From: Haplodiscus bocki
Lineage: Eukaryota
Length of the DNA stretch: 64,000 bases
Reading direction: 5' to 3'
Assembly: GCA_965655095.1 (NCBI GenBank)
Contig: OZ296649.1
Span: 4,650,001 to 4,714,000 of the forward strand
In this document: positions 39,051 through 64,000 of the stretch, in pieces
Position numbering within the stretch: position 1 is the stretch's first letter
How the letters are laid out: the number at the start of each line of letters is the position of its first letter
Translations under genes and position numbers: made by a program
Notes under the pieces: generated by a model
Database searches by the model: none
What the model was told of the DNA's origin: nothing
What the model saw: the letters and a program-made list of their open reading frames with translations, nothing else

Positions 39051-39085
39051 CAAACATATTTACAATTTTACAGATATTTACCAAT

Positions 39086-39595
39086 ATGTTACATCCATCT
39101 GCACAATTAGAACCAATTACTAACGATGAAGTGAGGAGACAGAAAAAAAATCAATGTCATTAACAGTTTCAATAACTCTTTTGAGAATCCTAAGAAAATG
39201 ATAAAGTATTTCAAAGATGACCATCGCGAAACAAGGGAGAAATATGAAAAATTTAAAGTTTTATCTACTACATTAAGAATGGTTGACAATTTTGCAAATA
39301 ATGCAAAACTTCGACTTCTGAAACAGTATCTGTTACTGGTTTTGGATTGATAGTTCAACTATTTCCCACTGGAAATGTTTGTGGATTAACAATAATTAAA
39401 AATAACTCACCTAAAAAATTTATGAATAAATAAAATAAAGGTAAGAAAAATTATGAGAGAGCTCAAAAAACTAATAACTCTTTTGCTAACTTATATAAAA
39501 AAGGTTTTAAAGATAATGCAATTGACAAAAAAGAATCTCCATCGAGTGTTTTCTTAAAACACGTAATTGAAATTGAAAATTATTCCTTCTTAGTA
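39086..39595 (+). pseudogene. Membrane protein homolog, copy 3
   Basis: MLHPSAQLEP...FKVLSTTLRMVD...VSVTGFGLIV...YERAQK; homolog of 22085-22600. Confidence 0.55.
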
Positions 39596-39865
39596 ATAAA
39601 GTTATAAACATGAATTTTATTTTAGTAAGATTAGTGTAAAAGTGAAAGTAATCTTTGCTAGAATAAAAAAGCTCTATGAGCTTGTCGAAGGCCCGCGGCT
39701 CTCCCAGCCATGCTAGAACTTTACTGGAAAGGCACCAAGAACAAAGCCTAGAACTCAGACTAGAACTTTCCTATTTTCAAGTAATACTTTGAACTTTTGT
39801 AGGGAATGTAAAAATCGGTTAGATGGTGATAAACTGTATAGAAAAGTGAAAATTGTATGTGAAGA

Positions 39866-40510
39866 TTGCTTGAAAATAAATTAAAGGTCAGTTTGGTGCA
39901 AAACATCTTTAATAAAAAATGGCTGCCAAAACCTAAGCGTGAAAAGAATAAAATTAATAATAATAGATCTTCAATTATAGGTCCTTCTTTTTCTGGCAAA
40001 ACTTACCTTATACTGCGAAAACTAAAACTTGTTATCAACAGGGATAAGTTTGTTATAACTAGAACACCTGAACAGTTTATTGTTGATTTTAAGGTTGAGG
40101 AAGGAAATAGAGAGACACGTGATTTTGAAGCTGGTATTGTAGTGTCTGGTGGTCTGTTAGATTGAAAATGAAAAGCAAACTTCTATTATTGGCAAGAGGA
40201 AAACTTAGAGATACAGTTGTTTAATGTTTATCACAATCATACACTGATCTACCAAAAATGACTGTAAGAAATAAGAGTAACACAATAATCAAATTTGAAC
40301 AAACTTAAAAAGTTGTGGAAAGCCTTTACAGAAAAAATGTTGGGTTTGATATGAGTAGTGATGAATTCAAAAGCCTTTGTTGAAAAACTTGGAAAGATGA
40401 ACATAATTATCTTTATTTGTGAATTAAGTGAAAACAAAATGTTGTAATTCTAACGAAAACAAACCTGAAAGATAAACTGAGTGCATACTTGGAACAATTC
40501 CTCTTCAAAA
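39866..40510 (+). pseudogene. A32/FtsK-like packaging ATPase, copy 3
   Basis: Intact Walker A GPSFSGKT; downstream ARG...LSQSYTDLPKMTVRNKSN typical of viral packaging ATPases. Confidence 0.85.
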
Positions 40511-40594
40511 ACCAAATACGTTTCTATCTACCTAAATATACAGATACCCCTTTACACAAAGTCTATACGATGAAAAATTTTATTTAAAAAAATC

Positions 40595-41535
40595 ATGTTT
40601 TCTGTTGAAAGTAAAGAAGAACTAAACGCTTTAGGAACACTGGGTGAAGTGGAATCTAAAGTACGAAAAATACATTTACAGGCAAAAATAGGTGAGCATG
40701 ATTTTCTTCATGACGCAAATGAACTTTTTCAAGCAATTACAAAAGCTGTCAGATATACAAGTAATAAATTACGTAAGCATTCTAAAGCTACATTTCTGGC
40801 CATTAAAGATAAATATAAAAATTTTCCCGTAAAGACTAATGCTTTAGCTAATACAGAAATACTTTTTGAGAAAAGGCATCCACACCAACTATGCTAAGGA
40901 TTTGATAAACGATGATATGAGAAAAAAAAGATAAAATGATGTCTTCTATGAAAAAAACTCAATTTGCATTAAAATTTGTTGATGATACTAGTGCAATAGG
41001 TGAGAAAACCTTTACCTTTTAGAAAGCCGATCAGTTAAAATTGAGGGAGAAAAATTTATCTTCCAAAAATCCCCCCTTACTGAAACAGAAAAAGTTTTCG
41101 AATTGAAAATTGATCTGTTAAGTATAATGACTAGTATGAAAATCAAAAAAAAAAGACTGAAAGTGGTGACTTTTTACTTCGTTTTAATAGAACGGCTACT
41201 TCTTTTTCAAAAAAGAACACTTGCCTTGGTACCTGCGAATGATGGAAGTTTGAAGGTTTATAGACTAATGATGGAATTTGGGGAAGTGATGAAATTGTTG
41301 ATTAATATGATACCTATGATAAAGATATTTAGGATAGAGAAGTTGAGCAATCTGGTTTTGGCTTAGCAATTTTTCTTTCAGAAAACCCTGATGAAACATG
41401 CAACAGATTATAAATAGTAACACAAGAAAAAGATAGTGTGATTCATATTATTAGATTGGATGCTAAAATTGTTGTTCTAATTGACAAACTATTTTAATAA
41501 ATGTTTTAACTCAGCTCAACATGAAAAATTTGCAG
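40595..41535 (+). pseudogene. Conserved Polinton coiled-coil protein, copy 3
   Basis: N-terminal KVRKIHLQAKIGEHDF and C-terminal FLSENPDETCNRL. Confidence 0.6.
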
Positions 41536-41551
41536 TCGGTTTTATGTTTTT

Positions 41552-42768
41552 ATGAGCAAAAAAATTTAGCTTGAAAAAATTTCAAATAGATAGACCAATC
41601 CTTAACTAACTGTGGTTAAATCCGTTATGTCCCATTATTTTTATTTACTATATATGAATTTAATTCTCAAATTTTTGATGATTTACCAAGATAAAAGTCA
41701 TTATTTTCAATAACAGTTTTGTAGTTAGAATTAGATTTTGATGTTCTTATTGCCGCTAATGAAGATATGGACACCCGCAACATATTTGTATAGTAAGTTC
41801 AGATCCAATTGCTTTATTTAGTGAGTAAAAGTTAACGAGTAGTAGTGGAAAACAGAAATTTTTACTTTTGTTTGTTTATTTAGTTAATGTATAATACAAT
41901 AACAAAGACTAAAATTAGTGAGGACTTGTCTATTGGTTATTACAAGACCCGATTGAAAGAATAGGAAAGTTTCGTAACTTTAGGTACAATATTACAGTAG
42001 GGAAAATTCTTGTTAGGATTTTTTTACAAGATTTCTTTGAATTTGCAGAGCATTAACAAAACGCAACATATTGATTAGGTCTCAAAAAATATTGAGAAAA
42101 AAACGATACCAACGCTATTATCCATGTCTTATTAGCACCAACTAAATAACACACATCACTATAAAAGACATCAGTTGGTTTATCCAACATTATATAACCA
42201 ATCTTTCTCAGCAGACAATATTAGGAAAACATACTATTTCCAAAGCCCCGAAACAATCATCATATACTGAAAGATCGTTTGTAGTAAAACCTGTGGAAAC
42301 ACAACTTATTTGAATGTGTGAGTTCGGAGTAAAGTTTGGTTTTGATATACTTTTTTCTTCATTATTGTGGGGTTCAGAAACATAAATCGAGTAGACAATG
42401 TTGCTCAAATTAAGGATCTTTTCTAAAGATTTTTGCTATTAGAGCGCAATGAATTTTTGAAACCGAAAGACTTCCTGAAACAGGTATAAAAGAAGATTAG
42501 TTTAATTACAAATGTTCTCAAGCATTTGGTGAGCTTCTATCTTGTTATAGACATTTTTGAAAACATAATATTCTTCAATCTTACACCTCAAAACGATTTC
42601 AGAAGGGATGGACACCAAATGTAAAAATCGAATTTAGGTTAAAATGCGAATTTAACCGCAGCTGGTCAGATTGTTGCAGCTGGTAAAACCGGTTATGCGA
42701 TATTATTATCGATTAATTTTTTATCAATCAGCGGTGATGGTCAAAGACAAATTGATCTCAAAAAAATG
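41552..42768 (+). pseudogene. Probable major capsid protein, copy 3
   Basis: Homologous to 24650-25893 (EDLSIG, QDFFEFAE, IKDISWFIQHY, SISGDGQRQIDL). Confidence 0.65.
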
Positions 42769-42769
42769 A

Positions 42770-43580
42770 AGTCATTTCATTACGTTCTCTATTTCTTTCA
42801 TTTATAACTCTGATTGCTTTAGCACTGCACCGTTAAACTTTTGAAGCAAGTTGTTTATATGATAGGTTGGTATGGAACCATCAATCTTTTCTTTAATTAT
42901 GTACAACTTGTCAGACCAACGTCTTTACCACCTCTAGAAAAAAATTTCTTGTCTGCAGTTCTAACTAAAAGTCCTAATTTCAGCTTTGGCTTTCTTTTCT
43001 TTCTTTTGTCTAACAGTTTTTGGTAAACAATTTCTTCATTGTTTTTTGAAGATGCTTCAAATGGTGTTAATTTAAGTATAGTACGTTGTTCTAATATTTT
43101 TGTTTTGTTACTGTGTTTGTTTAAGGATTTGCATTTCCATCCAGTAACTTTCTCGAATACAATTTTTTCAAGAAAATCTCTAACAATTCTACTGAAAAAT
43201 TCAGCGAGAGTTTCACTTCCGATGAATCGCGTCCTATTCTTCTAAGATTATTTTTAAATGGAAAATCAAAAACTTTTCGCTTACAAACTCTTTTCCATCA
43301 TCAGTTTCAACTGAATTCTGTTTTCTCGTTGAAGAATATAAAAGTTTTTTCTGATCACACCTTTTTGTTTGAGGAGTCCATTCGAATTGTGACAAAATAT
43401 CGACTACAATATACCTAAAACTTTCATCATTTTCTGGGCCATATTCGTTTAGATCCTATAAATCAATGATCCAAGAGTCATCTATGAATTGTACATCAAA
43501 TTCTGTGGAAGCATATTTCTTGCTAGGGGGCTTGGTATAGGCTTTCTTTAGAAAACGCTCAATTCTTCCTATTTAACTAG
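42770..43580 (-). pseudogene. rve integrase, copy 3
   Basis: Reverse complement gives IDDSWIIDL*DLNEYGPEND...YIVVD, VETDDGKEF and KPKLKLGLLVRTADKKFFSRGG. Confidence 0.8.
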
Positions 43581-43599
43581 TTATAAAAAACCCGTATTC

Positions 43600-46500
43600 A
43601 CTTCGTGATTTTCTTCTCAATTCATTTATATTAACTATATAGATTTTAGTTTGTTTGATTCTTGCCCTGCATATATCACAAATCTATTGAACAGATTTGG
43701 CACGTTTTTCACACTTTCTGCTCATGTTCGTACAAAAACTCACCTTGAAGCACACTTTTTCTAACTTTTAAAAAAATTTTGTTCAACAGCCGTTCCACTT
43801 TGCATATAAAATCACCTTTTTCAATCTAATTCTCTGGCAACATCTTCAGATTTTTCCCAGACCCTTTTTTCTCCTATAAACTCATCTTGTTTAGTTGCTA
43901 GAAAAAGTTTAATTTTACTCGCCAAAAACAAAACAAAAATACCACGACTACCATAATCATTTTTTCACTGTTGTAACTCATGCTCATCATAACCTGCTTT
44001 ATTTAATTTACCAACATGATTTTTTCCTACTTATAAAGGATGAATGTCCATGTAATAAACACTATAAGTTTAAATGCCGTTTGTTTCTCTTGAGAAATGA
44101 TTCTATTGTTTTTGCTGTTGCTTAAAATAAAATAACCTAAATATGATGACATTCCATTAATTTTGAGGTTTCATCGTCACCTATTCATTCATAATTTTTA
44201 CCTTTCACACTAAAACCTCCATTTTCAACTGTGAGATATTCTTCAATTCTTTGACCACCTTCATGTTCCATACATCTTTTAGTTTCCAATTCATGCTTGT
44301 AATCTATATCTTTCCTAAGAGTGTCGCCAAACAAAAAGTTCAATAAAAAATTTATCCAATAATATATAGTATATTCATCTGTTCCTTACATTGTTTTCCT
44401 GATAAATAAAAATTCTGTTTAACTTCTAAAAAGTGGACATTTACAGTTCTCTTCAAACAACACTCCTACAAAAACCTCAAAAACTGTACCACCAATCTCT
44501 ACAAGTTCTTGGATGTCAAATGATGTTAAAGTATCAGTTATAATTTCACTTCTCAACAAGTTTACTTCTTGGTTTTCGACGTTTTACATAACAGGTACAT
44601 GTTGTAGATTTAAGTCTTCTGGGTAGGTATTATTTTTTATTCTTAATACTGAGTTAAATGTTCCGTATTTTCAGTTCCAATTTTTTCGTATTAAATCTCT
44701 TAACATGTCCTTCATTCATATCTTTATTGGAAACAAAACCTCTTTAATTTTTTTGCAAAAAACTGATTCCATAAGTGACCTTGCTTTAGGACACAAAAAA
44801 TCAGGACCAGGAAGGGGTGTACAAAACCACATGGTTCGTTTGTTGTAACATGGTATCTCTGAAAATCTTTCCTGATATTTTTTCTTTGTCATTTTCATCG
44901 ATGTTTCTATCTTCGTCGAAATTTTTTTCGCAACAGTTTTCTTTATTATCTTAATATTCCGTTAAGTATTTTATATGTTTCTGCTTGATATCAAAGATTG
45001 GAAATTTTCTGTCAAATTTTTTTATTCTTTTCTAAAATTGTTTAAAATAATAATCCAGTTTCCTCTTCTAAATTATTGGTCGAAAGCTCCTCTTCTCTCA
45101 CCTTTTTTACTTTATTTTTCAAAATGACGCATTTTTTTATCTGTGTACGTATATATGGGTTCATCGTCTCTGAACATCATTGAACGAAAAAATTTCTTTC
45201 CTGAAGAAGGGAGAGATGGTCATTTTTTCTTTCCGAATGAAGTATTTTTCGACAAATTCATTGTATATTTTGCATTAAAAACTACAGACAAAATATAGAC
45301 TTTCAAATACGGTACCCTGTCCCCTTTCAAACATTCCCAAAAGTCTTCATATAATTTTTCAAGATCCATGTTTTTTTCCAGTATTTGTTGTTTTAAACCA
45401 AATTCTTTACCAAATTTCCCTAATCACCTTTGCAAGTGCTTCTTAACGGAAACTACTTATATAGATTGTGGTTTCGTATTTGTGCTTTTTTAATTTCTTT
45501 AGCATCGTAGAAACCATTGAGAATTTTCGCACTATTTAAATTTTGGAATTTTGGGCAGTTTTACCTGGGTTGTTTAATCTACAAAAAAGTAGGTACATCT
45601 TTCAAAATATTCCTACTATCAAAAACTTACCCAATATGGGCGTTAAAAGTTTTAGTTTTCAATTAGCAAAAAATGGTATGCACTTATTTTTTATCCATTT
45701 AGGTTCACGTTTACATAGTTTTCAGTATTCAAACATTTCGCTAATACAATCTTCATCTTCCATTAAAAATGGATCACTTTTTTATTTTTCTATCTCTTCT
45801 TTCGCTCAAATCCGATCACAATTTTTGAAATTTTTTTTGATAAAAACAAACTGCATGTGGTATTGCTCTACCTCTATCGTGAAGTTTTACACTATTTAGT
45901 GGTTCTTTCTATTTTTCTTGGAAAAATTTCATCTTTTTCATATGGAGTAATGGTGTCGTAATTAAAACATGCTGCTTGCAACTCAAAATTTTTTCCACAT
46001 CTCCATTAGTATCCAGTCAAAACACACTGCCACGTTTCCCTAATCCACAGAAATGAATTTTATACGAAAAGAAATTATTATATCTTCGTTTACACAATCT
46101 AGGAAATATCTCTTTGCGGATCAGAAATCTAATATATATGCCTATTGTTTCATAAAGTTATTTATGTCGAGCTTCAGTTATAACTGTTCTTCCAGAGTCA
46201 AAACTTTTCATAAATTCAAATTATTCATTGTAGAAACTTTTTCTGCTGAAAACGCGAACACACTTTGCAAAACAATTCTGCTGGTATGCGTGAAAAAAAT
46301 TTTTCCGTCATGTTCTTTGATTTTATAAAGCCAATCACTTCCTTTACCAAATTCAGTACGTTTTACTTTTCCAAAAGGAAGATAAAAAAATTCAACCGAA
46401 TATCCATTAAAAGCCATCATTTGGATTCGGTCTTTATATGCAATGTAAACTTTTATGTTTTTAAAAGGCATAGTTTTTTAATCAGTGTTCCCATTGTAAG

Positions 46501-48058: not shown

Positions 48059-50539
48059 GCTTAAAGTTCTAAAAAACTACAGAGTTTACATCGGTAGTCA
48101 AGTACGCAATATCTCAATGAACACGACCGGGCTTAGCGTCCACCGACAGAGTTGAGGAGTAAAGGAATGTTCAGGACGGGGAATCCGCGCCTTTGAATCA
48201 CTACCAGACCAAAGCGCATCCCGCTCCCCCAAGTCAGCATTCAACTGAATTGATGAGACTTATGCAGTCAGTAACGTCATGAACCCCTAAAACAACCAAA
48301 ACAAGGTCGATTTCCCGATATTCCCCTTCAACTCCAAGAGCATAACACAAGAACTACTTCTTTCTGAAGTTCGTTCAAAGCAAACCAAAAAATACGGGCG
48401 TCACAGCACGTTACAGTTTTCATTTCTCCTCGAGCCAAGGCTTCTTTCTCTGATAATGTGTCACTGGGTAAAATATTTGGTTAATCGGAGGCAACGGATG
48501 TCCAAGTTTTTTGACAATTTGACTGTTTTGTCTAGATGAGTTCAAAAACTCGAAGTGACCTGAACCCTGACCTTGATGACATCTTAAGAACATGGGTAGT
48601 GGCTGGTAGAGAAGAACGCACCTTTGTCTGGGCCTCATAGAGAACAGCACAAAAGAAAGACACGAACAATAGAAGCCCAAAACTATAAAAAAAATGACGT
48701 ATCATTAACTTGAAATCCGGATTTTTTACATCTATTTATCAAGTTATTTTGAACTGTTTATTCCCAGAATGCAAAATCTTCAGATGTTAATAATATTTGG
48801 TGAGAAGCAACTTTTTACGATTTGTATTGAGGTTAGACTAACGATTTGGTCTGAGATCACTAGTTTTTACCCCAAATGGCCAGTGCAATCCCCGCGCTTG
48901 CAGATCCGCTACCCACACGGAAACCTCAGGCTTAAAATTTATTGAGTGTGCAGGACGTAGGGGATCTTCTGTGGTCCCGGGCCGCTTTGTTTGCTTGCTC
49001 ACTCCATCCAATCGTCTTCGCGTAGCACCGCATGTATCTTAGGCATGTCAGCATATAAGAGTTTGTGAAATTATTGATTTTTCCAAACAATTTGGGAGCT
49101 ACTGTGAGATATTTGTGAGGAATTTAATGAAATTAGCAGACAATAAAATAAGCACAACCTATTTAAGCAGAAATTTTGTGATTACTTCAGTGGAATTCAA
49201 TTGATGAGAACACAAACTAAAATTTCAGTGAAAATTTAGGTTTTTGAACGGTTTAAAAATTAATTCAAATTGAACTTCAGAATAATCTGATTTTGAGGGT
49301 AAAAAAGTATATTTTGTGACCTAAAGGTGTTGATGAATCACAGTTCTATCTTGTTTTTTTTTTGTTTTTGGTAGTGTAACGTACCGCAGACAGATTTCGA
49401 TTGAAATTCTAATATCTCAAAAAAGTCATTTTTAAACCAAAATGATCGGTGTTTAACTTTTCCTGAATTTCTGTTTCTCTTATTCGACATACTTAAGCAA
49501 GTTTGGGTAGATAAAATGACTGAGATTTTGCCCCCCCCCCCTCCCCTCGAGTATCTTGCATCGTTTCACCGGCAGATGCAACATGGTGCCATTCTATGCT
49601 TGTCTTTAATTCTTATTATTTTTAAAACTAACTGGAAAAGATGAGTGCAAACACAAAAAACTTTAGCCACAAGTACTCCCTAAACATTTGCTTCAATATC
49701 TCTGTCGTCTGTACCGTGTATTGCTTTCTCTAACAGTATCACAAGTGGGAGAATGTTGGTATGAAGGACTCGAGAAACATTGTACGGCTCTTTGTAGGCA
49801 AATCAAAGTGGTTGTTGCATTGCATCAGTATTCATTCGAATGTTCCCAGCTGGAAAAGGATCGATTTGCAGTCATTATTGATGCTCAATCTTCGGATCAA
49901 TTTCAAAACGATTCTGCATAATGCAGCTCATTACTGACCAGAGAGCGTGAGGTTTTCTGAGGTTTACTACGATACCTATTGTGTTGTAAAAGGATGACTA
50001 TAAAAGGTTGAAAAAAATGCGGAGCTCAAGCAGTGAGAATACCAATTTCATTTGCATGCTAGACACACTTTTTGATATTTACGCAACGGTTTTACCATTC
50101 ATTTAATACTTCTATTGTTATTAATTTTATCGCGCGAGACTTTTGACTATTATTGCTTTGATGATTTTCCACACATTATTTTGTTTTCTGAGAATTTCTC
50201 TGAACCTGAAATTGGGAGGGGGAGTGTGTTCTCAAAAGCTTTTGTTTTTCAAGCTATCAACGTGTGCTTATATCCCTGTATGGAAAATTAATTACATTGT
50301 GTCTCAGTGCTATAAATCGTTGAAAAACTGTTTGCCAGGCTGTCAGGGATTGCATTTCGAAACATTTGCATTGAAAGGGACAAATCTCTGAAACACGAGG
50401 TGCTTTATTAGGTGGAGAAAATGTATTCTATGAATGAATTGAAAAGTTTTAATCCCTCATCACGATTTGTCTATGGATTTAAAACTTTACTTGTCTCCTT
50501 CGCAGAAGAACAATAAACTTTTTTCAGGCGAAAAAAAAA

Positions 50540-52093
50540 TGAAGTAATATGTAAAGTCCTGAACTTCGATCAATATTTCTGATTGCATACGTATTATCTA
50601 CGTATTATCTACGCTTTGTCTATGTATTATTCCGGAGTACTGATCCAGATTGGAACGGAACCGGTACGGAACAAACGGACATTTACTTATTTTTCTACTC
50701 GCCTATTTATATTTTGAAGCTGCTATCTTTATAAGTAAATTATGTAATTATTAGTATAATACCACCATCTCAACAAAGAGAGCAGTAATTAAAAATGGAA
50801 TTGACAATGTCGATGAATTTGCATAAATTAACTGCAGTATATAGAGCGTGACTTTAAAAGTGAATATTTGTTCCGTACGTGTTCCGTCGCTATCAATCTG
50901 GTGACGTCATTTGGAGTAAATCCAAACCACTGTGCTACAATGCTGTGTCATTTTGGCCCGTTACTGAAGGATTCAGTAGTCACTCATTTCATTCATTTCA
51001 GCAGCACTGAGACCAGCAGTGCTAAATGCAAATACCTAACCGTTTCCGAACACATTGATCAAAATGGGGAACCAGCTAGTAGATAAGAGTAACGGACTAG
51101 GAACAAGCCTAGTTTCGCTTCAAAAAGGTATTTAATTGATGAGCAGTCGAATTATATATAGTTTTTTTCATGTAATGATGAAGTTCCTTCATGATTTTAT
51201 TTAGTTTGATGAGTTTTCCTAATTTTCTCCAGTATGGGAAAACTTTTAATCTGCTGTTTAAAAAACATTTCTTGTGTCGTTGCGGGAATAAGCATTTTGA
51301 TGTCCATTTCTGACGGATGAGGCCCGTACTTTTTTCATTTAAATTGGAAGACACGCGGCTTATGAGGGAAGAGATGGATGGAGGGGTGTTTATCTCTCGC
51401 CACACCGGCATTTTTTAATTTATAGTTAATATGATTAAAATACTTTTCCCTAATTGTACCTTCACTTGGCGTGTAAACAGCCAAGGAAAAAAATAAAAGG
51501 AAAGACGAAAGGATTACTAAAAGTACTGTTATATTGATATTGCTGAATGTTATTCCCATTTTGTATTTCAATTAACCGTCATTTGATTGGGAGCTATTCC
51601 GCCATTGCAAAGAAAGCCACTTTTGTGTTGCACTCAAGGATTCAAATTGAAATTTAAAAAAAATCAGACTTCACCGCTGATGAATGTTTTTCCCGACGAG
51701 AATGGCAAGTCTGAGAAACAGGCAAAAACTTGCAGCTCCTAACAAAGGGAAATGGGAGGATCATCCTATGAGCAACCTGCCACACAACACAATTGTTTCC
51801 AGATCACAAGAGGATTATATCTCTCAAGTCTCTGAAAAAATCGAAGATAGAACAAACAAGAAGTTGTACAAGGAGTTCAGTTAGACGGAAAGCCGCAATC
51901 TAGGTGCTATCTACCAACTCCATCAGTTTCTTCTGAACCCACTAATCCAGGGCTACTCCGGACCCACTCCGAAGACATCCGGGAAAGCACTTCGCACAAA
52001 CTAGGGACCGAATGAGGGCGACTCCCAGAGTGATCCTCGTCCTGAAGGGAGTTTCTCTCACAGCTAAACTACCCAAGTTTTTGGCCTACGACA
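50540..52093 (+). repeat. 5' LTR (first ~170 bp missing or unrecognisable)
   Basis: 50540-50810 aligns with 63745-64000; homologous to both solo LTRs; ends TACGACA at 52093, followed by an eroded PBS-like TGAGACAAGAG. Confidence 0.8.
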
Positions 52094-53280
52094 TGAGACA
52101 AGAGCTCAAGAAGAGATTCCCTATTGCTCCCGTGGGACTTCAGGCAAACAAAAGAAAGCGCGCACATTTAGCCACAATTCCGCAGTGAAAACATGCCTGA
52201 GACAATTGAAGCAGACCAGTTTTTGTTGGCCTGTCAGCAGTTGGCGAGCAACAGCGACTCCGGCAAATTTAACAACAACATCAACAGGATTTCAAAACTG
52301 CCCAAATCGCTCACGACAACCATGACCACCTTCTATGGAAAATCAGAGAAATTTGACCTGTTTCAACACCTACTCCAAACAAGTTTAATTTTTCACGATG
52401 AACTCACAGAAGAAAACAAAATAAACTATTTCCACTCTCTCATGCGTGATGATGCACTGCAGACGTTCAGAAACATCAGCAGCCAACGTAGAGAGAATCT
52501 GGGAGCCATTATGCCTGTGTTCCATAGGAAGTGCATGAAACCCCAGTCGATTGTTATGGCGAAACACAAACCTCAACAACTGATTTTCAATCCGACGAAC
52601 CAAAAGTTAATTGATGCTTTGGACGAACTCTAGAAACTAGCAATAAAAGCATTCGGAGTTGCTGTCCAAGCGATCATAGAACATTCTATGTATGCCATGA
52701 TGCCTCCATTCCTGAAGAAATCCGTGATTTAAGCACACTTGGAGATAGAGACCTACGAACAGTTTGCGTCACAGATTGAAGAAGAGTTAGAGCTGAGCAG
52801 CCTGTAGGCCCCGAATGAAAGGCAAATAAATACTGTGACGCAACACGCCTCAAAATCAAACTCTGAAAAACCAAAGCGGACATCTCATCACTTCAAAGAA
52901 CCAGATCACTATCGTGCACAATGCCACCAACTCAACAGAGGAAAAAACCAAACTGAAAACTAAAAAATAGTGCTGTCATTAACAATAACAACAACATTGG
53001 TCAAAAAAACACTAACCCTAACAATAAAAATGGCAATAATAGCAATGCTACCAACACAAACAACTGAAATGACAGGAAACCAAGAACTGTCTATCCACGC
53101 AGTGAGACTCGTGGCAGAACCAACCATTCCTCAGAGAAAATGGTTTTTGGAGCCGATGCAGCTAACAGACTGCCTCCTCGAAATGGCAGACCAATGGGAC
53201 AGAGTCAAAATCAACAACAAGAGACACAAAACAAAATTTATGCAAGTGCCTAGGCTGCAGCCCAATTTTTGGAACAGAAA
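51701..53280 (+). pseudogene. gag: Gag (starts inside the 5' LTR)
   Basis: MASLRNRQKLAA...; capsid-like TTFYGKSEKFDLF...KINYFHSLMRDDAL; eroded zinc knuckle TSHHFKEPDHYRAQC. Confidence 0.85.
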
Positions 53281-53289
53281 TGCCACGTC

Positions 53290-56200
53290 TTTACTCCGAA
53301 ACTGCTTTTGACAGAACGGAGAACACCACATTGACAAAACTTCCACCAAATTGAGACTGTCTGACAGCAACCCACGGATACATCCGCTGACCACCTCAAG
53401 ATAGATAGTACTCATAAAGACTTTGCAATTGAAACTACTCAAAGGACTCTAGAACTCACAGACACAAAACAATATGACGTAGCAAATCAAACGTCGCCAC
53501 TGAAAGGAATCCAACCTCTAAGCTCCGTAACTGCTACGGAACAGTTCCAGGAAAGTCATGCTGGGAAGGGATTGGTACCGTTCCTCAACGGCCCCTATAG
53601 TTGTCCCAACGACATCTAAGATTCAACAAAGCACATAATGACTACCCATTGCGGAGGTAACAATATTCTTCCTCTCACAATAACAACCCGACACATTGAA
53701 CAAAGGTTAGCGAGAGATGAACGAACCATTGAAGTCTATCTCCAGCTAACTTCTACAGTAGTCTTGAAACGCAGAAAAGAAATGCTCTATGTGCTTCTGG
53801 ATTTCACGAACGGCCTAACTAAAGACGCCCTAGCAGACTCAGGAGCTTATGTCAAGGCAATTGCCCAGAATGAATTGGACAGAATAAAACAACAGGCCCC
53901 AAATATTGTTTTCAAAAACGACGACCCTCCCAAATTTCAATTATAAGTAGCAAAGGGACAGTTGGAGAAACCATTAGCAACAGTCAGAGTTAAATTTGGT
54001 CTTGGAGATAACACCTGTGCCGAACATTTTGTTGTAATGAAAAATTTGTCAGGGGCATTTTTCGGAATGCACTTCATGAGACACAATAGTGTAGTCGTTG
54101 ACACGATGCATGGTCTCATACATCTTCCACACTTGACAATGCAAATCAAAATGGCTCCGAACTAAGCAAGGGCAGAACCCCAATCTGTTCACACTGACGA
54201 TACCCTCAGAACACCACCCAGGGCAACGATATTCACTACAGTTTTTGTTGATCATATTCCGGAATGGAAGGCAACAAGGCTGTGACAAGAATTGAGAATT
54301 TTACGGAAACAGCAAGGTTGCTGACTTCCCGCTCAATGTCAACGAGATTAGGCAAAAAAAGTAGCAGTCACAGTAGCCAATACAACGGAATCAGCAACTT
54401 TAGTCAAGAAGAATACACAAATTGCCGATTCTCCGTAGTCACTGCAGAGCAATCGAAATTCATCAAACCGGTGGACATGGCAATCCGCAATATGATTCCG
54501 GAAGACATCCCAATTTGACCACCTACTTCAACTAGATCCTGAGAACGAACAAACTAGAACAGCAAAACAACACTTTCTGGTTTCCTACATCTAAAAATCA
54601 TGGTAAAACTGAGGATCACAGACCAGTACAGACACAAATCCTCAAAGAAAAACTGCAACTACAGCAAAAGTAGAAATCGATCCACAAGACGACACGAAAT
54701 CACATATTCAAATCTTTGAACGATTTCATTGGACAAATACAATGCTTTCAGAAGCTGAAAAACAAGCAATTGAAGATATTTTGACTGAAAATTATGACAT
54801 TTTTGCCAGACACCGAATGGATATTGTGTTGAGCACGGAGTCTTACTTGAAACTCATTCCAAAAAACAATAAAGCCGTTTACTGCTAAAGATAACCAATG
54901 CCAATCCACGTGAAAGAAGATCTAATTGTTGAAATGGCTTTGATGCACCAATATGAAGTTATTACAGTACTGCCTTTTTCCAAGTACAAAAGTCCCATCC
55001 TCGCACAGAGAAAACCCAACAGAAAACCACGTATTCTTGTGGATCTCCGGAAACAAAACAGTCAAATTGCAGATTAAAACAGCAACAGCAATCACCTAGT
55101 CATCACTTTGTCAGGCGCAGCACAACACCTGGCAGGGAAGTCTCTCTTCTGCAAGCTTGATTGCTCCCAGGCGCATCACTGTTGGCAGATGGTGGACCAA
55201 CGGTCAAGGGAAATGCTTGCATTCAATTTTGCTGGGAGTTTTGCCAACAAAGAGCTTGTACAAGGTCTCAGCGTACTTAGTACTTTGTGTTTGCATTCTC
55301 AAGTTTCAATTGTGAGTATTTGGAACCAGTTGTCCAAGCTGACCAATGTGCTCAATACCTGGGCGATTTTGGGATCGCAGAAAACAAGGCTACGGATCTT
55401 ACCCGGAACGGATGGGCAGTCCTCATGTGAATTTGACAAGCAGGGTTTAAACTGACAGAAAACGGTCAGTTTGGAGTCTGACAGGTTGAATTCTCTGGCG
55501 GAACCATTTCACCAGGAAGCAATTCACCTTGAACTCGGAAACCTCAGAACTTTGTTGGCAATCTCAGATAACCCAAATCGAAAAAAGCATAACAACGCTA
55601 CCTGGGACTCGTGAGTTACTACGGAAAATATATTCCCATGATGGCTGAAAAGTAAAATCCCTTCTAGAACTTGCTCAAAAGAGAAACGCTATTAATATCA
55701 CTATATACCTCAGAGAAACATTTGATTCAGTAAACAAAGCGCTCACAACAATGCTTGTGAATTAGCATCAAAATAACCCTTTTGAGTGAAGTAACTAGTC
55801 TTCATGACTCATACAAGCTTCAGAAGCACTGGTTATGCCCTCATGATTGAGAATAACCTAGACCAGAAGATCCAATCAAAGCGGAAAATAATAGCCCCTG
55901 CGGCGTTCAGATCAAATATCATTTCCCCTGCGCAACTCAAAATGCCCATCCACTCGAAAAAAAATTTTGGCAATCAACATGGTTTTTATCAATTTGGCAC
56001 GGAATTTGTGGGAGACAACAAAACCAACGACTGTCCTAACAGATAACGAGTCAGTCACAAATTTTTTTCCAAACAAAAGCAGTTCCATCAGCGTTGAGGA
56101 AGGCATGTGTTTATGTGTTTATGTGTTGCAAATTATCTTCAAAACTGCACACATTGCTGGCTCAGGCAACACAGAAGCTGACCTTCTCTCCACACTAGAG

Positions 56201-58133
56201 CTCAGAGTTACGGAGAGAATCTGTCTCAAAATCCGGGAAGAGATGCAAACAACACCGATTGATTTAACCAAATTTTCCTTGGATGACGCTGACGAAGATT
56301 AGTTCTTATTTGACCTAGCATACATCAAGGACGAGTCAGAGCAACAAACCCTTCAACGAAAAGATCAAAAGATTGGGTAGCAAATGAGGAAACAACCCCT
56401 TTGAAAACTAGTGTCGAAGAATTTACAAAGATCGACGGAAACACTACGTCGTATTCCACCAAGAATGGAATCAAAGCAAATGCACAAATACGAGTAGAGC
56501 TGGACGTTGATCTGTTTCTGATGAATTTAAAACCGAAGATTTTAGGCCAATTTTATGACGAAGTGCCACTGACACCAGATGGACGATACAAGCACTAAAA
56601 AACAAATGAGGATCACATAGTTCTCAAAAAAGGCCTACTGTTCCGGAAAAACTACGGAGAAACTGTTAGCGTCAGATACTACCAAGTTCTCATACCAAAA
56701 CAACTTGCTGATGAAACACTCCGGAACCAACACAAAGAATTTGGTAGACATCCTGCAATTACCATATTAGTAATGGCGTACAGGCGGAAGTACTACTAGC
56801 CAAACATGGCGCAGTTGATAAGGAAGTGGACCACTACGTGTGAACATTACTTCAAGGAATCACGAATTGATAACAGACTCACCCTGCAGAAGCCCAGTGA
56901 ACACATCACAGCACAGAAGAAACCCTGCCAAGTGACCTGGTTCCGGAACTACCTCCGTCCGGTGGCTATCAAAATATCGCTACAGCTATGGATGTCTTTT
57001 CAAGAGATCTGTTTGCCTACCCTACCAAAAGCCAAGATGCTTAAACAGTTGCCAGAGTTATTATCAACATCATGATCAAGCACGCATACTTGCTGACATA
57101 AATCATTTCCGACAAGGGATCTGCCTTCGTATCCCAACTGATAAAAGAAGTAGCAGACGTCCCAGGATTAACTTCAGCATATGCAATTGGCATGCTTGAG
57201 AGAACACATACCTCACGGAAGAAAGTAATTTATATCAAAATAGGCGAACAATGGTGAATGTGGGACAAGTACGTCGACATTGCTGTTTTAAAGTACAACA
57301 CGTCCTTTCACACAACCATTGGGTGTGAACCTAGTCAAGTGTTCCACGGACGTCTTCTGTACAATGTACTTGACTTGAAAAGGGTCATCCGTCGGACAAA
57401 AAAATCTAATCAGATTTCTCGAAATGCCCAAGACGTTCTCGATCAGACCGAAATAATTTTCCAGGATGTACGCAAAATGCAATGCACGCTTACATCAAAT
57501 ACAAAGCCCACTGTGACAAAAAGCAACTGCTTCAAAACTCAAAGAACGCAATTGCGTCTATGTGCCATACCCCGAAACAGATCATCAAGGCAGCAAAATT
57601 TTTTCAAAGACTTCCGTTAGATTGGGCGCTATGTCATCGAGTTTTTTAAACAAATGACAACTAACTTGTCTGCTCGGTTAGAAAACATAAAACACAAGTC
57701 CTTAATCGCATGCGACTATAACTGTTCACGTCCGGAGAATCCATACCTGACGTACAAACCACAAAGCAAGATCTGGAAGTCATCATTAAACATGTTGGTT
57801 TGTACGCCAGAGCATGGGAAACTGATTTTGGAAACCTCGCTTTCGACAACAATCGTGACGGAGCGAGCCCACCTAACCGGCGTGAAGTGACAATAGAATC
57901 TGAGCAAACAAATGGTGAAATGTGTAGCACACCAGGAACCCCACAAGAGGGTTCCCGAGAAATTTTCCCCCAAGGGACGGATCGTGTGACGCAACGGATA
58001 CAAATCCCTACAAGGAACCTGATGCGGAGATGAGTTTGGAGCAACTTAACCCTAACCCTAGCAACCCCCGCAGTGAAAAATTTACCTGCGTCACAATCCC
58101 AAGCCTAACTATCACTACGATTACAGATACTAA
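53290..58133 (+). pseudogene. pol: Pol polyprotein (protease, RT, RNase H, integrase)
   Basis: LADSGA protease site (~53830); RT LVDLRK, KLDCSQAH and eroded YxDD (QYLGD, ~55355); RNase H MTHTSFRSTGYAL; integrase HPAIT and SDKGSAFVS (~57110). Many stops and frameshifts. Confidence 0.92.
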
Positions 58134-58486
58134 ACAGTCCACCTATCTTAGTATACTCCACGGAAAACATAAGTACTCTTTCCAGAAATCCTGCGAACGT
58201 GCCACGGAACCGATACGTACTGATTCAAAGAACTCTTCCTACCTAATTGTGGATACTCCCTGGCGACTTACTACAATTATTACTCAGTGCTACTTGCTTC
58301 AAAACATGGCCAAAAGTGGTAAATTCCTATCTACAAACAGGCTGAGTTCAGACTAACTATGATTTCAAAGTTGACAATACTAATATATACACAAAAAAAC
58401 AGATTAACAGATTGCAGGTAAGTGGAAAATGAAAGACAGTCTGGCAAATTGCGAAGAGGAAACAGTTTGAATTTATGGCAACTCCC

Positions 58487-61400
58487 TTAGAAAAGGCTTG
58501 CAACTCTTCGATCCAGTCCACTTCGGCGCGATTTCTCACGGGAGGACTGCGTTGTCATTGAAGACGCGAAAGTTGGATCTTGAACCAAAAATCCTTTCTG
58601 AGGGTTGACTGGCGGACTGACAACCTCAAACTGACGCGGCAGCTTCGCAGACACCCGCGACACTTTCTTTTTCCTTTTTCCTGGAGGAATAAATTCTGTT
58701 CGGAGCAGGAACATTTCGGGAATGAGCAGTCATAGGCACGTAATCAACCTGCGCGTCCTCGACCACCGTGCAAATACGCACGCCGTATTGTGAGGTGTTT
58801 TCTCTGGATGATGGTCTCACAGCACCCAGTGCATACGACTGCTCGCTTGTATCTTTCGCACTACGACGATCATCGAGCGCTTTCTCAAAACACGCGGGCA
58901 AATCACCCACGAATTGAGCTGATGACTCAGTCTGGACCTGACACTACGCAGCATAAAACGAGCTGCTGGTGATGCTGTCAGAGATGGCTGCTGCTTTGGA
59001 CAACATAGCAACCAAAATCATGGACATAGAGCAGAACACCACGCACTTCCTCTTCATTGACACGCACCCGATCCACGTTTTTGATGAAATTCTAGCCCGT
59101 CGTCACTGGCCCACGAATGACAAGTGCTCCTGATTGAAAGACTTGAAACAAGCTACAAGAAAAACTAACTTTATTAAAAACACTTTTTCCTACATGATTG
59201 AAGACAATACACACTTTACACAGATGGCGCCGAACACGGAAACCAACCTGTGAAGGGCAAAAAATGAAGGAGTTCCTTATGTCAGGGCGGCTCCTCGTTG
59301 AAGTCCAGTCAAGCTGCTTTTGCTCTTGCACAAACTACTGGTACTGGGATGTGCAGGCCTCCATCTCAGCACCTTTTACCTAGAGTTTCTCCAAAAGTCC
59401 AACAAGCAACATGCCACAAAATTGCAGACGAGCATGTTCATCTCCGCCAATTAGTATGGGAGGGCAGAAGCAACTCAACCCTTGGCCTATAACAGACCTG
59501 TTGTCAACAGTAGACAGAACGCAGCTTACAAAGGCCTGAAGAACTTCCTCGCGTCTCGCCGAAACTCGCTTTTCAGATAGTAGCTCCCACTTTCTTCGCT
59601 GGCTACCAGAACTCGTGTGCCAGCAAGGAATCGTTCTTTTTATATGGCGGCAAATTTTGAATGGTTGAGAGTCGTGTAGTAGCCTCACTGCTCCACATTA
59701 GCTAGGGCATTACACTTCTTTATCTTCGAGAAATAAAACAATTCACGAAATGAGCAACTTCACCACAGGCGTAGAACCCATAATCGGCTGCGTACTGAGG
59801 GTGTACAAAATTGGTGACAACTGAAGCAGCAGCATGAGTCAAAAACATGGAACCAACGTCACAATGGCCCAAAAAAGAAGCAAAATGCCTAAGACTCATT
59901 TCACAGAAAACGTGGAACCAATGAGGAACAACACTAGTGAGTTCCTAGAAATTTTCGTGAAACAGATCAGGAACGACTTACTAACAAAAAGTTATATAAC
60001 ATCTGAACACAGCCATAAACTTACACATCTCAAGCATCATGCGGAAAAAAGATAACTTCAGGCGAACGGACTGGTCAAGATAAAAATAGCCATCCAGCCT
60101 CGTCTTCTAAATACCAAAAATTCGATATAGAAGAGTGCAGAAATTTGTTAGTTCGAAAGAGAAAAGAAGACCTTACCACAAGACTGTCGCCATCATCTTT
60201 TAATCCCTTCTCCTTGAGATATAACACGATCAGGGGCATCCCTCTCTCAAAGTCGGTCACGAGTTCAATAACCTGCGGCATGGCGAGGTTGCTGGTAATG
60301 ATGGATTTCTTCAAGGTGGGACAGGAAGCCATCCAATCACAAACCACTGCTTCCTTCAGTCTGTTAACATTGCACTCCGTCAAAGAGTAGGGGTTTAGAC
60401 TGCCAAAGACGCTAGAGGCAGTTCGTTGAAGGCAGCGGTAAACAATCGTAAATCATAGCACTGGAATTCCATCAACTTGTGATGATACCCGCTGCCCAGA
60501 AATGACGCTTACGCCTCAATGAGCGCACGTGGGCCACCATGCAACGACACCACACGAACAATGGTTCCAAAGGCCTCAATGATCCGTCCTAAGGTCCTCA
60601 CTTCCTGGTTGACGTTACCACTGAAACGGCTCAGATTGGCAACGCAGACTCTGTGAAACTCACCCAGCATCGACGGAGAACCCAAATGTGATAGCCGCAC
60701 TCTTCCACATCAATCCCACAGTATCACTGAGCTTTGACCCAGGTGAAAGTCTTGCTGAGGATACGGGAATACATGCCGTTCAAAATGATGGATTGAAAGC
60801 AAAACAGCAAGGAATCAATCTGAACAACTACGTAAAACATGGAACAAGTCAAACACTCACCGGAACGTGATCAGTTGACCATGTCACGTCTACATTCACT
60901 TGCCCGGAGACAAGAGTGGAACGGGACCAGAGCTGGTGGACAATTTCTAAGCTCCCACCCAAACGTAATGCTTCCACCAATGATGATAGCTTTGCCAGCT
61001 CTGGGAGATTGACGTCGACTGTCCCAGAACTTTCCATGATCACGTCCTCATAGAAAACATCTTCCTTGTCCCTAGCCATTTGTGGAGTCTTCAGAATCCG
61101 CTCCCACTGCCACTCTATCTGCTCATCTGTCGTGGGACTCCCTCAGTAATCCAGTGCGCGGCAGCCGGGAGTCTCCAGTCAACACGTTTGCCGCGAGGGA
61201 AGTGCTTTGGCTCCTGAAAATGCGGTAGATATTCGTTCAGCCCATGGGTGAGCTCGGACACTTTCCTCCAGCACACACCGCAAAAAAATGACTGGGTCTC
61301 TTGGAATTATCAGTGGGTCCGGTCACAAAGAAGCGGCCTAACTCAACCGCCCCCACACCTTCTTTATTCTGTCGGTCCACTTTGAACGGACTCGTTCACT

Positions 61401-62470
61401 ACCATCAGTCTCGTCGCCGCTGGTGTCAGTGGTCTCAACCATCCAAGGAAAAGCACTTGGTGGACCCTGATCTAGGCGCTGTACAAGCCCCAAAACGTCA
61501 TCCAACCCTGTAAACAAGCAAACATACAAAGAAGACATGAAAGAAGAACAGGTGGATAATACGGAGACAATACTTACTATTCAGTAGAGATTCCAAAATT
61601 TGTGCCCTCTCCTCCGCGCAAATGGACCGACATAAGATGACAAGTTGATGTCTTGTTGCGTTGATAGTAGTTGCAGCAGGATCAGTTGTGGAATGGTGTG
61701 AGAAAAGAATTAAAATAATGGGGAACTGCTCTGGAACGTCACAACAATTCTCATATAAAACAATACATACCATTGTCGTTTGCGTCCCCTAAAAACAATG
61801 GACTGCGCTCGCGGTCGTCATTTGGAATGGGAACGGCGGTAGTACCAGTGAGGGTCACTAGGCGTCCGGTAACGATCGCACATCGTTGTCTAATCTGGCT
61901 CATGGTCTCAACTTCGGCCGAGATTTCCCCACCTCCGGGACAATTTATGTCAGCTTCAGCCTGACTTGGTAAAGTATCACAAAAATACCATCGTCCGGAA
62001 CTCTGCCGAACGCAATGTATTTATTGCCGCAAACTTGATGTGAAATCAAAGGGAGGACTCTGTGCAAAATTGGGCACCTCGTCACAAGATGTCAGAGGAC
62101 CAACTTCAAACTCGACTCCGGATCCACCCGGAACGTGTACAACATCATCCACCGGAACGGACAGCACGCTCCTCGGAAGAATCGAACACTAATACATAAT
62201 AGTCCCATGATGCCATCTTCATGTAAAAGCGCGCTAAAAACTAGCTGGTGGAAAATATGAATGGTCACTGAATTAGTCCTACAAACAACGAGCTAACGAA
62301 AAGGAGGAAGGAAGACTTTTCTAATGGCAGTTCGGACGTAGTGACAAAACCCTCTAAAACAGACTCTGGAAAAAGGTTTACTGGAACCAAGGTATCTTCA
62401 AGCAAGAATCTTTCAGATTGTGCGCTCTCATCTCCACGTCCATCGCCAACACCATCCACAATACTCCCCC
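58487..62470 (-). pseudogene. Antisense multi-exon gene inside the Gypsy element: zinc finger plus hAT-transposase-like protein
   Basis: GT-AG introns at 61508-61577, 60107-60176 and 59821-60024 join exons in frame; eroded introns at ~61700-61770, 60793-60860 and 59143-59214; motif FFCGVCWRKVSELTHGLNEYLPHFQEPKH. Confidence 0.7.
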
Positions 62471-63550
62471 GCTTCCATCGTGTGCATCATCCACACTTGC
62501 TTACTCAGCTCCAGGAACAATCTCGCCGCCTAATTGCTCAAGCGCTCTCGTGGTACACTCCTCTCATTCTCTATCTGCTGAATTTAAATTGAGGACAAAT
62601 GGGGGATCAAGGGACAACCTTCTCGCAACATCATGTTTAGCTATCGCCAACTGTCTTTCATCCATTACATGGTGGATTTATAGTTTTTTTGTTAAAAAAC
62701 TAAGATAATAATATCTCAAGTCGGCCAGCAGAGACCTCAGCATGTATTTTCAATGACACATTGAAAATTGATGCTGAAATGTTCCTCATTTTCAAATTCT
62801 ACATTTTCAATTTGTTTTTAAAGTATCAACTTCATTGAAGCTCACCGATTACTTGACTCCATGAATCCAATTGCTTACCGCGGGAAGATCAAAGGTTTTC
62901 CAGACTGATGAAAGTTTACTGCCGCTTCCCTGTTCTTCTTCAGTCACTTATTCATGTCAACCTGTCGAACTCAGTAGTTAAACCGTAAATTTCATTTCTT
63001 TGAAAATGAGCAACAACAACTCTTTCAATTCGACAAATTCAGACTTCTTCTGTGTGGAACAATTGTCCGGCGTGCAAAGACCAAAGCGAAATAACACCCA
63101 AGAAATCCTTAAGTCCACGGAACTTTCCGGAACACACACAAGGTAAAAGATCACCATCTCGACCGTGGCGTCCCCGGCACTCCAAAAAACTGACAATCAA
63201 TTCGGACTCAAACGAGCCAACTTCCTTTCTCGCCATGGGAGGCAAGATCCTATAATTACACCCAGTTTAAACGACTTGAATCTGCCGTCTAACTACTTTA
63301 GCAATCGGGCAACGGTGGCGGTTGTACCACCTACAATGCGTCAATGCGAGGAGAGAGAAAACCCACAATCACCGGTGCCGTCAGAACTGTCATCGAGTTT
63401 AACGCCACCAATGAACATTCGTACAGCTAAAAGATGACACGTTCTACTCATAAGAGGAGCCCCGAAGAATAATCCGACTTTCAAGCCCCTCTCCTTCAAC
63501 GCCACCCAGGAAATAGAAACGGAAGCTCAGCATAAGGACGTCCTTTCCCC

Positions 63551-63561
63551 AAAAAAGGGAG
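63551..63561 (+). promoter_or_regulatory. Polypurine tract
   Basis: AAAAAAGGGAG immediately before the TGTCGCAG LTR start. Confidence 0.8.
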
Positions 63562-64000
63562 TGTCGCAGCATGTCTGTGAAGACTGCGGGCAAGCGTTGA
63601 CTGAAGAAAAGGTTATCCCGGGTCACTCTACGAATAAGGATGAGACTTAACAAACACTAAACTCTATATTTATTCTTAAATTCAAAGTTCTGTATAAATG
63701 ATACGTAGCGTCCACGTAATATTCCTTTGGAAATGTGTTCAGGTAAGTGATATGTAACGTCCTCGTATCACTCCTTGGTGAATGTATTTCATGTAATTTA
63801 AACGTAGTGTCTATATATTGTTCCGGCGTATTGATCCACGTTGGTAATGAACCGCTACGGAACGCACGGTCATTTATTTATTTTTCTAATTGCCTGTTTA
63901 TATTTTAGAGCTGCTATTTTTTGAGTAACTTATGCAATAATGATCATAATACCACCATCACAACAAAGAGAGCAGTAATTAAAAACTAAATTGACAATGT
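63562..64000 (+). repeat. 3' LTR (continues beyond the window)
   Basis: Starts TGTCGCAG like both solo LTRs; 63745-64000 matches the 5' LTR. Confidence 0.9.

Follow-up and report, generated by a model that had tools for sequence, protein, structure and literature searches.

From our analysis of a 64,000-nucleotide stretch of DNA (hereafter the window), we found an old, dead copy of a Ty3/Gypsy LTR retrotransposon about 15 kb long, in which the minus strand between pol and the 3' LTR holds the remains of one long, intron-containing gene. The features of this copy, and of the antisense gene within it, are as follows.

50383..52093 (+), 5' LTR (about 1.7 kb), followed by a decayed primer-binding-site region at about 52094-52104
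52193..53310 (+), gag remnant
53620..58350 (+), pol remnant (protease, RT, RNase H, integrase), broken by many stops and frameshifts
58487..59142 (-), antisense gene, exon 9, including the stop codon at 58487-58489, with a 47-nt and a 2-nt deletion and premature stops
59143..59214 (-), intron 8 (72 nt), GT donor kept, acceptor AG changed to AA
59215..59820 (-), exon 8
59821..60024 (-), intron 7 (204 nt), GTAAGT..TTCAG intact
60025..60106 (-), exon 7 (27 codons)
60107..60176 (-), intron 6 (70 nt), GTAAGG..TTTAG intact
60177..60792 (-), exon 6, encoding the predicted RNase H-like core
60793..60860 (-), intron 5 (68 nt), GTGAGT donor kept, acceptor AG changed to AA
60861..61507 (-), exon 5, encoding the C2H2-like zinc finger
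61508..61577 (-), intron 4 (70 nt), GTAAGT..TTTACAG intact
61578..61697 (-), exon 4
61698..61770 (-), intron 3 (73 nt), GTATGT donor kept, acceptor changed to AC
61771..61965 (-), exon 3
61966..62034 (-), intron 2 (69 nt), GTTTG donor kept, acceptor changed to AA
62035..62188 (-), exon 2
62189..62320 (-), intron 1 (132 nt), donor lost (AA), acceptor TTAG kept
62321..62650 (-), exon 1 remnant, with the start-codon region deleted
62651..63005 (no strand), region between the diverging antisense gene and ORF3, putative internal promoter, with a decayed TGACGTCA site at 62732-62739
63006..63650 (+), ORF3 remnant, a second accessory gene on the sense strand, whose 3' end overlaps the polypurine tract and the first bases of the 3' LTR
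63551..63561 (+), polypurine tract (AAAAAAGGGAG)
63572..64000 (+), start of the 3' LTR, cut by the end of the window

The two LTRs lie in direct orientation and align with about 84% identity over the 194 nt of overlap inside the window, and with about 80% over 1.66 kb in a longer contig (L016), while the downstream LTR is followed by a second leader and gag start. The LTR ends and the polypurine tract were placed by analogy with a related element (L001), in which TG..CA ends are seen as in the window. The gag remnant gives only a weak DUF1759 hit, whereas the intact homologue in a second related element (L003) hits DUF1759, with Retrotrans_gag and zf-CCHC just below their cut-offs. Stop-to-stop pieces of the pol remnant carry RT and integrase motifs, and the region is about 70% identical at the nucleotide level and collinear with the intact 1,552-aa pol of L003. 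Pfam scans of the intact pol of L003 and of a very young, more distant element (L013) returned gag-asp_proteas, RVT_1, RT_RNaseH_2/RT_RNaseH, Integrase_H2C2 and rve, in that order, as in Ty3/Gypsy elements. LTR pairs are also present in L001, L003, L004, L012, L013, L015, L017 and L018, the designations being those of related loci retrieved for comparison. Rfam and tRNA scans of the window were empty.

We then aligned the window with three related copies (L001, L003 and L004) to delimit the introns of the antisense gene. A prior sequence-only reading had proposed six introns within 58487-62470, three with canonical ends and three with eroded acceptors, and all six sit at exactly those coordinates. 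The three called canonical (introns 4, 6 and 7) have GT..AG in the window, and the three called eroded (introns 3, 5 and 8) have AC or AA in the window but AG in the other three copies. Two more introns, introns 1 and 2, had been missed, and the gene runs further 5' than had been proposed, to about 62650. This arrangement is far beyond chance. Removing the eight introns of L004 (132, 69, 75, 70, 66, 70, 188 and 70 nt) gives a single stop-free frame of 1,171 codons. The window copy itself is a pseudogene with 13 frameshifting indels, 11 premature stops on the reference codon grid, and 5 of 16 splice dinucleotides lost. In the less decayed copies, GT..AG is kept at all eight positions apart from single lesions.

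The gene has 9 exons and about 1,185 codons in this lineage, and 4 exons in the distant lineage of L013, in which removing three introns gives an intact ORF encoding a protein of 1,291 residues. Introns 5 (phase 0) and 7 (phase 1) align in position and phase between L004 and L013, although protein identity is only about 21-27%, whereas intron 6 is absent from the L013 lineage. These two intron positions predate the split of lineages whose pol proteins are only 52% identical. The dN/dS is 0.17-0.28 in the proposed frame and 0.96-1.67 in the two shifted frames, and third codon positions diverge as much as or more than intron cores. From codon 240 onward (L004 numbering), every 60-codon window with a computable dS gives 0.07-0.37. 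The gene has evolved under purifying selection throughout the diversification of the clade.

The order pol (+), antisense gene (-), ORF3 (+) and 3' LTR is seen in the window, L001, L003, L004, L006 and L015. Although the copies sampled are few (about 13 informative loci) and some were fetched through the antisense gene itself, the loci fetched through pol alone (L012, L013, L014, L015, L017 and L018; pol 52-90% identical to that of L003) all carry the gene in the same place and orientation, six of six. Several carriers are young, with LTR identities of 99.9% (L018), 99.7% (L013), 99.0% (L012), 98.7% (L017) and 96.8% (L004), and clusters of hundreds of near-identical members exist. The interpretation in the sequence-only reading, that the family stably propagates a spliced accessory gene with its own antisense promoter, is supported, although stable propagation holds for the family and not for this locus, and the promoter and the splicing are inferred. 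That the hosts are animals is probable but indirect; near-identical elements occur in a Cyphastrea coral metagenome, and the family is probably from a stony coral.

The genomic RNA that is reverse-transcribed is the sense transcript, on which these introns read as CT..AC, so the spliceosome does not remove them and every new copy inherits them. In the absence of RNA data, transcription and splicing of the antisense gene remain inferences. We infer that the gene is transcribed from an internal promoter in the roughly 400-bp region that it shares, head to head, with ORF3, and that the antisense pre-mRNA is spliced by the host. Such a promoter, if real, is about 0.9 kb inside the 3' LTR and separated from it by ORF3, and not in or next to the LTR; the sequence-only reading had placed it near the 3' LTR. 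ORF3, whose start in the window was read directly from the sequence, is an intact 240-aa ORF in L003 and L004, with dN/dS of 0.16-0.29. A perfect TGACGTCA (CRE-type) site, which hints at a promoter, lies in 7 of 8 intergenic regions, about 115-130 nt upstream of the antisense ATG in L001, L003, L004 and L007, and within the same intergenic region in L006, L012 (three sites) and L015. However, L013 has no TGACGTCA in its intergenic region.

To predict the possible role of the antisense protein, we scanned all window exons, longer exons from L001, L004, L012 and L013, and 74 + 79 aligned homologues against Pfam, and nothing was found above threshold. A CxxC..HxxxxH motif is nearly invariant, and 25 of 74 members give weak C2H2 zinc-finger hits, whereas a weak Hanta_Gn-B hit, in one member only and below threshold, was dismissed as chance. 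Profile searches of PDB sequences with exon 5 and exon 6 alignments found nothing. Three word-indexed protein searches returned only unnamed ENA fragments, although these searches see only 0.55-1.75 times the query length, such that longer annotated kin cannot be excluded from them. An exhaustive search without such a limit did the same, apart from one named fish protein that looks spurious, and found no hit longer than 543 aa; no long, spliced-type protein turned up in these libraries.

The AlphaFold model of exon 5 was poor (mean pLDDT 51), but in the model of exon 6 from L004, residues 10-100 have block-mean pLDDT of 70-93 and the topology b1-b2-b3-a1-b4-a2, indicative of an RNase H-like core. 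Foldseek of this model against PDB and BFVD gave no match at E <= 0.001. The top PDB match was the hAT transposase Hermes, followed by other RNase H-fold proteins, but it is not significant (E = 0.037, TM about 0.25). The position after strand b4, where a DDE enzyme has its second aspartate, is S, H or Q, so nuclease activity is unlikely or of another kind. The inferred product has a variable acidic N-terminus, the C2H2-like zinc finger, the RNase H-like core without a conserved DDE triad, a helical C-terminal half and a lysine-rich tail. We propose that it acts in trans in the nucleus as a nucleic-acid-binding accessory or regulatory factor of the element, and that it was possibly captured long ago from a transposase-like gene, although both the transposase origin and the nuclear or regulatory role rest on weak resemblance.

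Overall, we hold this explanation with fairly high confidence, and the alternatives appear far less likely. A separate transposon with its own intron-containing transposase gene, nested in this one copy, could conceivably account for the loose resemblance of the zinc finger and RNase H-like core to a hAT transposase. However, the region is collinear at the same place in every related element examined, no terminal inverted repeats bound it in the window, and tblastn of all pieces against the rest of the window found no paralogue; such an insertion is refuted for the present elements, although an ancient capture remains possible. A host gene fragment that was transduced and merely hitch-hikes, neither expressed for the element nor useful to it, is unlikely. 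Gene capture by LTR elements is known (PMC7264820) and the origin of this gene is unknown, but transduced genes are normally confined to one or a few copies (PMC7264820), whereas this gene persists across lineages with 52% pol identity, stays intact in the youngest elements and shows dN/dS of about 0.2, and a useless 4.3-kb passenger should decay or be lost.

Conservation could also reflect a function of the sense strand, as the region is part of the genomic RNA and could carry packaging or export signals. Nevertheless, divergence has the three-base periodicity of the antisense frame only, and the sense strand has no stop-free stretch longer than 124-166 codons here, which also led us to reject an env-like sense gene in the 58-63 kb stretch; with the restored antisense ORFs of two lineages, this reading is very unlikely. 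It is similarly improbable, even without cDNA and although some gaps are multiples of three, that the gaps are not spliceosomal introns and that the region encodes several small antisense proteins or is expressed by some other recoding. Each gap begins with GT and ends with AG after a T-rich tract in the less decayed copies, and five of the eight lengths are not multiples of three, yet together they restore one frame. Gaps carry stops, indels and lower G+C (41% against 51%), and two positions and phases are kept in the distant lineage.

Among known systems, the antisense additional ORFs of plant Tat/Retand-lineage Gypsy elements (maize Grande gene23, rice RIRE2, Silene Retand) likewise form a family-wide gene antisense to gag-pol in an unusually long stretch between pol and the 3' LTR. 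In Grande it is transcribed from its own promoter and the product is nuclear, with a regulatory, DNA-binding role proposed but unproven (PMC11963269, PMC7264820). Those elements are from flowering plants, 97% of the Retand clusters encode the Transposase_28 domain (PF04195), which is absent here, and the two papers consulted describe simple ORFs and do not mention introns, whereas the present gene has 3-8 introns and about 1,200-1,300 codons and sits next to ORF3. Deltaretroviruses (HTLV-1 HBZ, HTLV-2 APH-2) also encode a regulatory nuclear protein on the minus strand of the provirus (PMC11963269). HBZ appears to be a small bZIP protein with one intron that starts in the 3' LTR; here there is no bZIP hit, the protein is about six times larger with a different fold, and the gene starts about 0.9 kb inside the LTR. 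In hAT transposases such as Hermes, an N-terminal C2H2/BED-like zinc finger is followed by an RNase H-like core and a large helical part, but no hAT dimerisation domain (PF05699) was hit in the C-terminal exons of L001, L004, L012 or L013, and the gene lies at a fixed place inside the LTR element. The sense-strand ORF3 genes of bdelloid rotifer Vesta, Juno and TelKA are extra genes acquired downstream of pol in animal Gypsy-like elements (PMC5408684), but they are expected to be expressed from spliced sub-genomic messages and encode env-like proteins, GDSL lipases or DEDDy exonucleases. Engineered retrotransposition indicator cassettes probably rest on the same principle of orientation-dependent intron removal, except that their intron is sense to the element and its loss marks a retrotransposition event, of which the present gene is a natural mirror image.

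It is possible, though doubtful on present evidence, that a whole clade of metazoan Gypsy elements has for a long time carried a captured, catalytically altered transposase-like gene on its minus strand and needs it for its own propagation or for dealing with the host. On this reading introns, kept because the gene is inherited only through reverse transcription of its antisense strand, have even been gained and lost inside the element (8 in one lineage and 3 in another, with two shared), which would make it a natural system for studying intron turnover in a retrotransposed gene and a new class of retroelement accessory factor in animals. Antisense accessory genes are known in a few plant Gypsy lineages and in deltaretroviruses, with roles that are still unclear, and in our literature searches we found no animal case and no case with many introns. 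This clade is abundant and apparently active, and keeps a gene of about 1,200 codons with 3-8 introns under purifying selection. It shows in nature that an intron-containing gene can be passed through retrotransposition indefinitely if it lies antisense, and it offers many independent copies in which to study the function of such accessory proteins and intron gain and loss. It also emphasizes to annotators that the multi-exon 'host genes' called by gene predictors inside LTR elements may belong to the element.

We first examined the composition of the window, which is eukaryotic; the background G+C is about 25-32% and rises to 41-48% over 52-64 kb. A direct repeat at 50.7 kb and at the end of the window marks a pair of LTRs, between which the plus strand holds a decayed gag (with a weak DUF1759 hit) and a pol broken into many pieces that still show RT, RNase H, and integrase motifs. 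From 58.5 to 62.6 kb, the longer stop-free stretches were found on the minus strand, and none of them hits Pfam. The three introns that the sequence-only reading had called canonical read as it described; on the minus strand, GTAAGT..TTTACAG lies at 61577-61508, GTAAGG..TATTTAG at 60176-60107, and GTAAGT..CTTCAG at 60024-59821. Elsewhere in the window, a gag-like-looking open frame (RNKRKLAALNKEN...) at 51684-51884 (+) lies inside the LTR rather than in gag, and a related, intact 137-aa version of it at 10907-11320 (-) sits in a second related LTR or element fragment at about 10.9-14.8 kb on the minus strand. We also noticed a diverged tandem duplication with a period of about 17.1 kb (about 20000-28000 against 37000-45000, 71-75% identity), which carries open frames with a recurrent ...SDCI.GSIVNG...PIL.SF... 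motif, while inverted repeats lie at 16.6-17.0 kb and 28.8-29.2 kb.

To determine whether the antisense region belongs to the element family, we performed an exhaustive protein search with one exon piece and found 174 relatives, of which the 19 looked up, other than one apparently spurious fish protein, are unnamed ORF fragments from ENA assemblies. In several of these, the alignment ran on through the intron and into the next exon in the wrong frame, which fits an intron of similar length at the same place in those copies. Fetching their contigs gave L001, a full related element with both LTRs that is about 68% identical in nucleotides to the window and collinear with it from 52.1 to 62.6 kb, as well as three further related contigs, namely L002, L003 (with an intact 1,552-aa pol and a 398-aa gag), and L004 (LTRs 96.8% identical). 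In all of them, the gene lies tail to tail with pol, as in the window. The window's own sequence was found in the same ENA sample, ERZ26859043, where the contig L016 is 99.95% identical to the window over 9,980 nt. In L016 (reverse complement, 9788-11428, beyond the end of the window), the downstream LTR is followed by a second leader and the first 50 or so codons of gag before the similarity breaks off, and L006, an 11.8-kb related metagenomic contig, likewise runs ORF3 (an accessory sense-strand ORF), LTR, gag, pol over 1-4310. These look like tandem elements sharing one LTR, or like assembly of one-LTR circles.

We then built a gene model from a four-way alignment, which shows eight gaps between conserved open stretches. 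In L004 these gaps are 132, 69, 75, 70, 66, 70, 188, and 70 nt, and removing them gives one stop-free frame of 1,171 codons, although L004 has two lesions, as the donor of intron 4 reads TT and a stop lies 14 codons before the end seen in L003. Mapped to the window, the introns are as follows.

Introns of the antisense gene (minus strand) and their state in the window
62189-62320, intron I1, donor lost
61966-62034, intron I2, acceptor lost
61698-61770, intron I3, acceptor lost
61508-61577, intron I4, intact
60793-60860, intron I5, acceptor lost
60107-60176, intron I6, intact
59821-60024, intron I7, intact
59143-59214, intron I8, acceptor lost

The last six are exactly those proposed in the sequence-only reading, which had not listed I1 and I2. 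The sites lost in the window are GT or AG in most of the other copies. Introns have lower G+C than exons (41% against 51% in L004) and also carry stops and indels. In L001, intron 6 is 277 nt (8995-9271) because about 200 bp, including the end of exon 6, is duplicated. The window copy itself has 13 frameshifting indels, 11 premature stops on the reference codon grid, and a deleted start region.

Nei-Gojobori estimates on the exon columns gave dN/dS of 0.17-0.28 for all six pairs in the proposed frame, whereas in the two shifted frames the values are 0.96-1.67. Identity at third codon positions is as low as, or lower than, that of the intron cores. The first 240 or so codons are loosely constrained, but from codon 240 onward every 60-codon window with a computable dS gives 0.07-0.37. 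The sense strand has no stop-free stretch above 124-166 codons in this region. So the constraint is on an antisense protein.

To estimate how widely the gene is distributed, we searched with pol and found only unnamed ENA proteins, of which one group is 75-91% identical and a second is 50-58% identical. Six loci were fetched through pol alone and, although the loci sampled are few, all six carry a homologue of the gene, antisense and just downstream of pol.

Loci fetched through pol alone, with pol identity to L003 and identity of the LTR pair
L012: pol 57%, LTR pair 99.0%
L013: pol 52%, LTR pair 99.7%
L014: pol 88%, LTR pair not seen
L015: pol 78%, LTR pair 93.7%
L017: pol 53%, LTR pair 98.7%
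L018: pol 54%, LTR pair 99.9%

The pol of L018 (5463-10640) carries a dUTPase domain (a weak precomputed hit), and this lineage has an antisense first exon of 724 aa. In L013, removing three GT-AG introns (154, 88, and 70 nt) gives an intact 1,291-aa protein, which aligns with the L004 protein over the conserved two-thirds with 243 identical residues. Two of the three L013 introns fall at the aligned positions and phases of I5 (phase 0) and I7 (phase 1), while I6 is absent from L013 and L013 has one intron that L004 lacks. So some introns are older than the split of these lineages, and others have been gained or lost since. A host-looking gene with an HLH domain (L013:24989-25073) lies next to the young L013 insertion, which comes from ENA sample ERZ25074608.

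A scan of JGI metagenomes found seven loci in Ga0126342 and Ga0126343, and the contig L006 has the same gene order. The gag and pol of L006 are 95% and 90% identical to those of L003, but its antisense protein is only about 50-65% identical to that of L004, which suggests exchange of the accessory module between lineages. Ga0126343 is identified in a preprint as a Cyphastrea sp. coral metagenome (10.1101/391565). The host is therefore probably a stony coral or something living in one, although this is indirect and the low background G+C of the window is probably not what would be expected of a coral.

In our searches, the protein has no Pfam or PDB-sequence relative. Exon 5 holds a nearly invariant C-x2-C..H-x4-H motif, which gives weak C2H2 hits in 25 of 74 members, but its AlphaFold model was poor. 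The fold evidence covers only exon 6, the model of which has block-mean pLDDT 70-93 over residues 10-100, with the order helix, three antiparallel strands, helix, strand, helix; that is the RNase H-like topology. A Foldseek search against the PDB gave no significant match; nevertheless, the list is headed by the hAT transposase Hermes (E = 0.037) and includes poxvirus resolvases, UvrC, RNase HI, Mos1, and retroviral integrases. BFVD gave nothing useful. A glutamate on strand 1 is largely conserved, whereas the position after strand 4 is S, H, or Q, so a DDE active site is not kept. The C-terminus is lysine-rich. Our best guess, which is an inference, is a transposase-derived, nucleic-acid-binding protein.

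Between the antisense gene and the 3′ LTR lies ORF3, a second accessory gene of 240 aa on the sense strand. It is intact in L003 (7668-8390, minus strand of the contig), L004 (7689-8411, minus strand of the contig), and L006, with dN/dS of 0.16-0.29, and it has no Pfam family but has a CxxC near the C-terminus. L012 and L013 have an ORF of similar size and place but without detectable similarity. In the window, the neighbors of the antisense gene are as follows.

62732-62739, decayed TGACGTCA site
63006-63650 (+), ORF3, decayed
63551-63561, polypurine tract, overlapped by the last codons of ORF3
63572, start of the 3′ LTR, also overlapped by the last codons of ORF3

The two genes diverge from a region of about 400 bp, which in 7 of 8 loci holds a perfect TGACGTCA palindrome, a CRE-type site (L004:8689; L003:8674; L001:6323; L006:4586; L007, a further related locus, at 36; L015:18326; and three copies in L012 at 18753, 18921, and 18971). 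The site lies about 115-130 nt upstream of the antisense ATG in the four loci where the ATG was placed. Just upstream of the antisense start there is also a conserved CCACCATGTAAT, which could be a one-codon upstream ORF or a donor-like site. We infer that this region is an internal, perhaps bidirectional, promoter.

The nearest analogues are the antisense ORFs of plant Retand, Grande, and RIRE2 elements (PMC11963269; PMC7264820) and deltaretroviral HBZ, from which this gene differs in protein family, size, intron number, and host. Rotifer LTR elements capture extra genes, but in sense orientation (PMC5408684), and our literature searches for an animal or coral case found none. In the absence of RNA data, we infer that the antisense pre-mRNA would be spliced and translated; its overlap with the genomic RNA could also give double-stranded RNA, as discussed for plants (PMC7264820). 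The sense transcript from the 5′ LTR is the template for reverse transcription, and introns of the antisense gene are not introns on that RNA, so they are copied into every new insertion. This is an established principle, one that appears to be used in mirror image in retrotransposition reporter cassettes.
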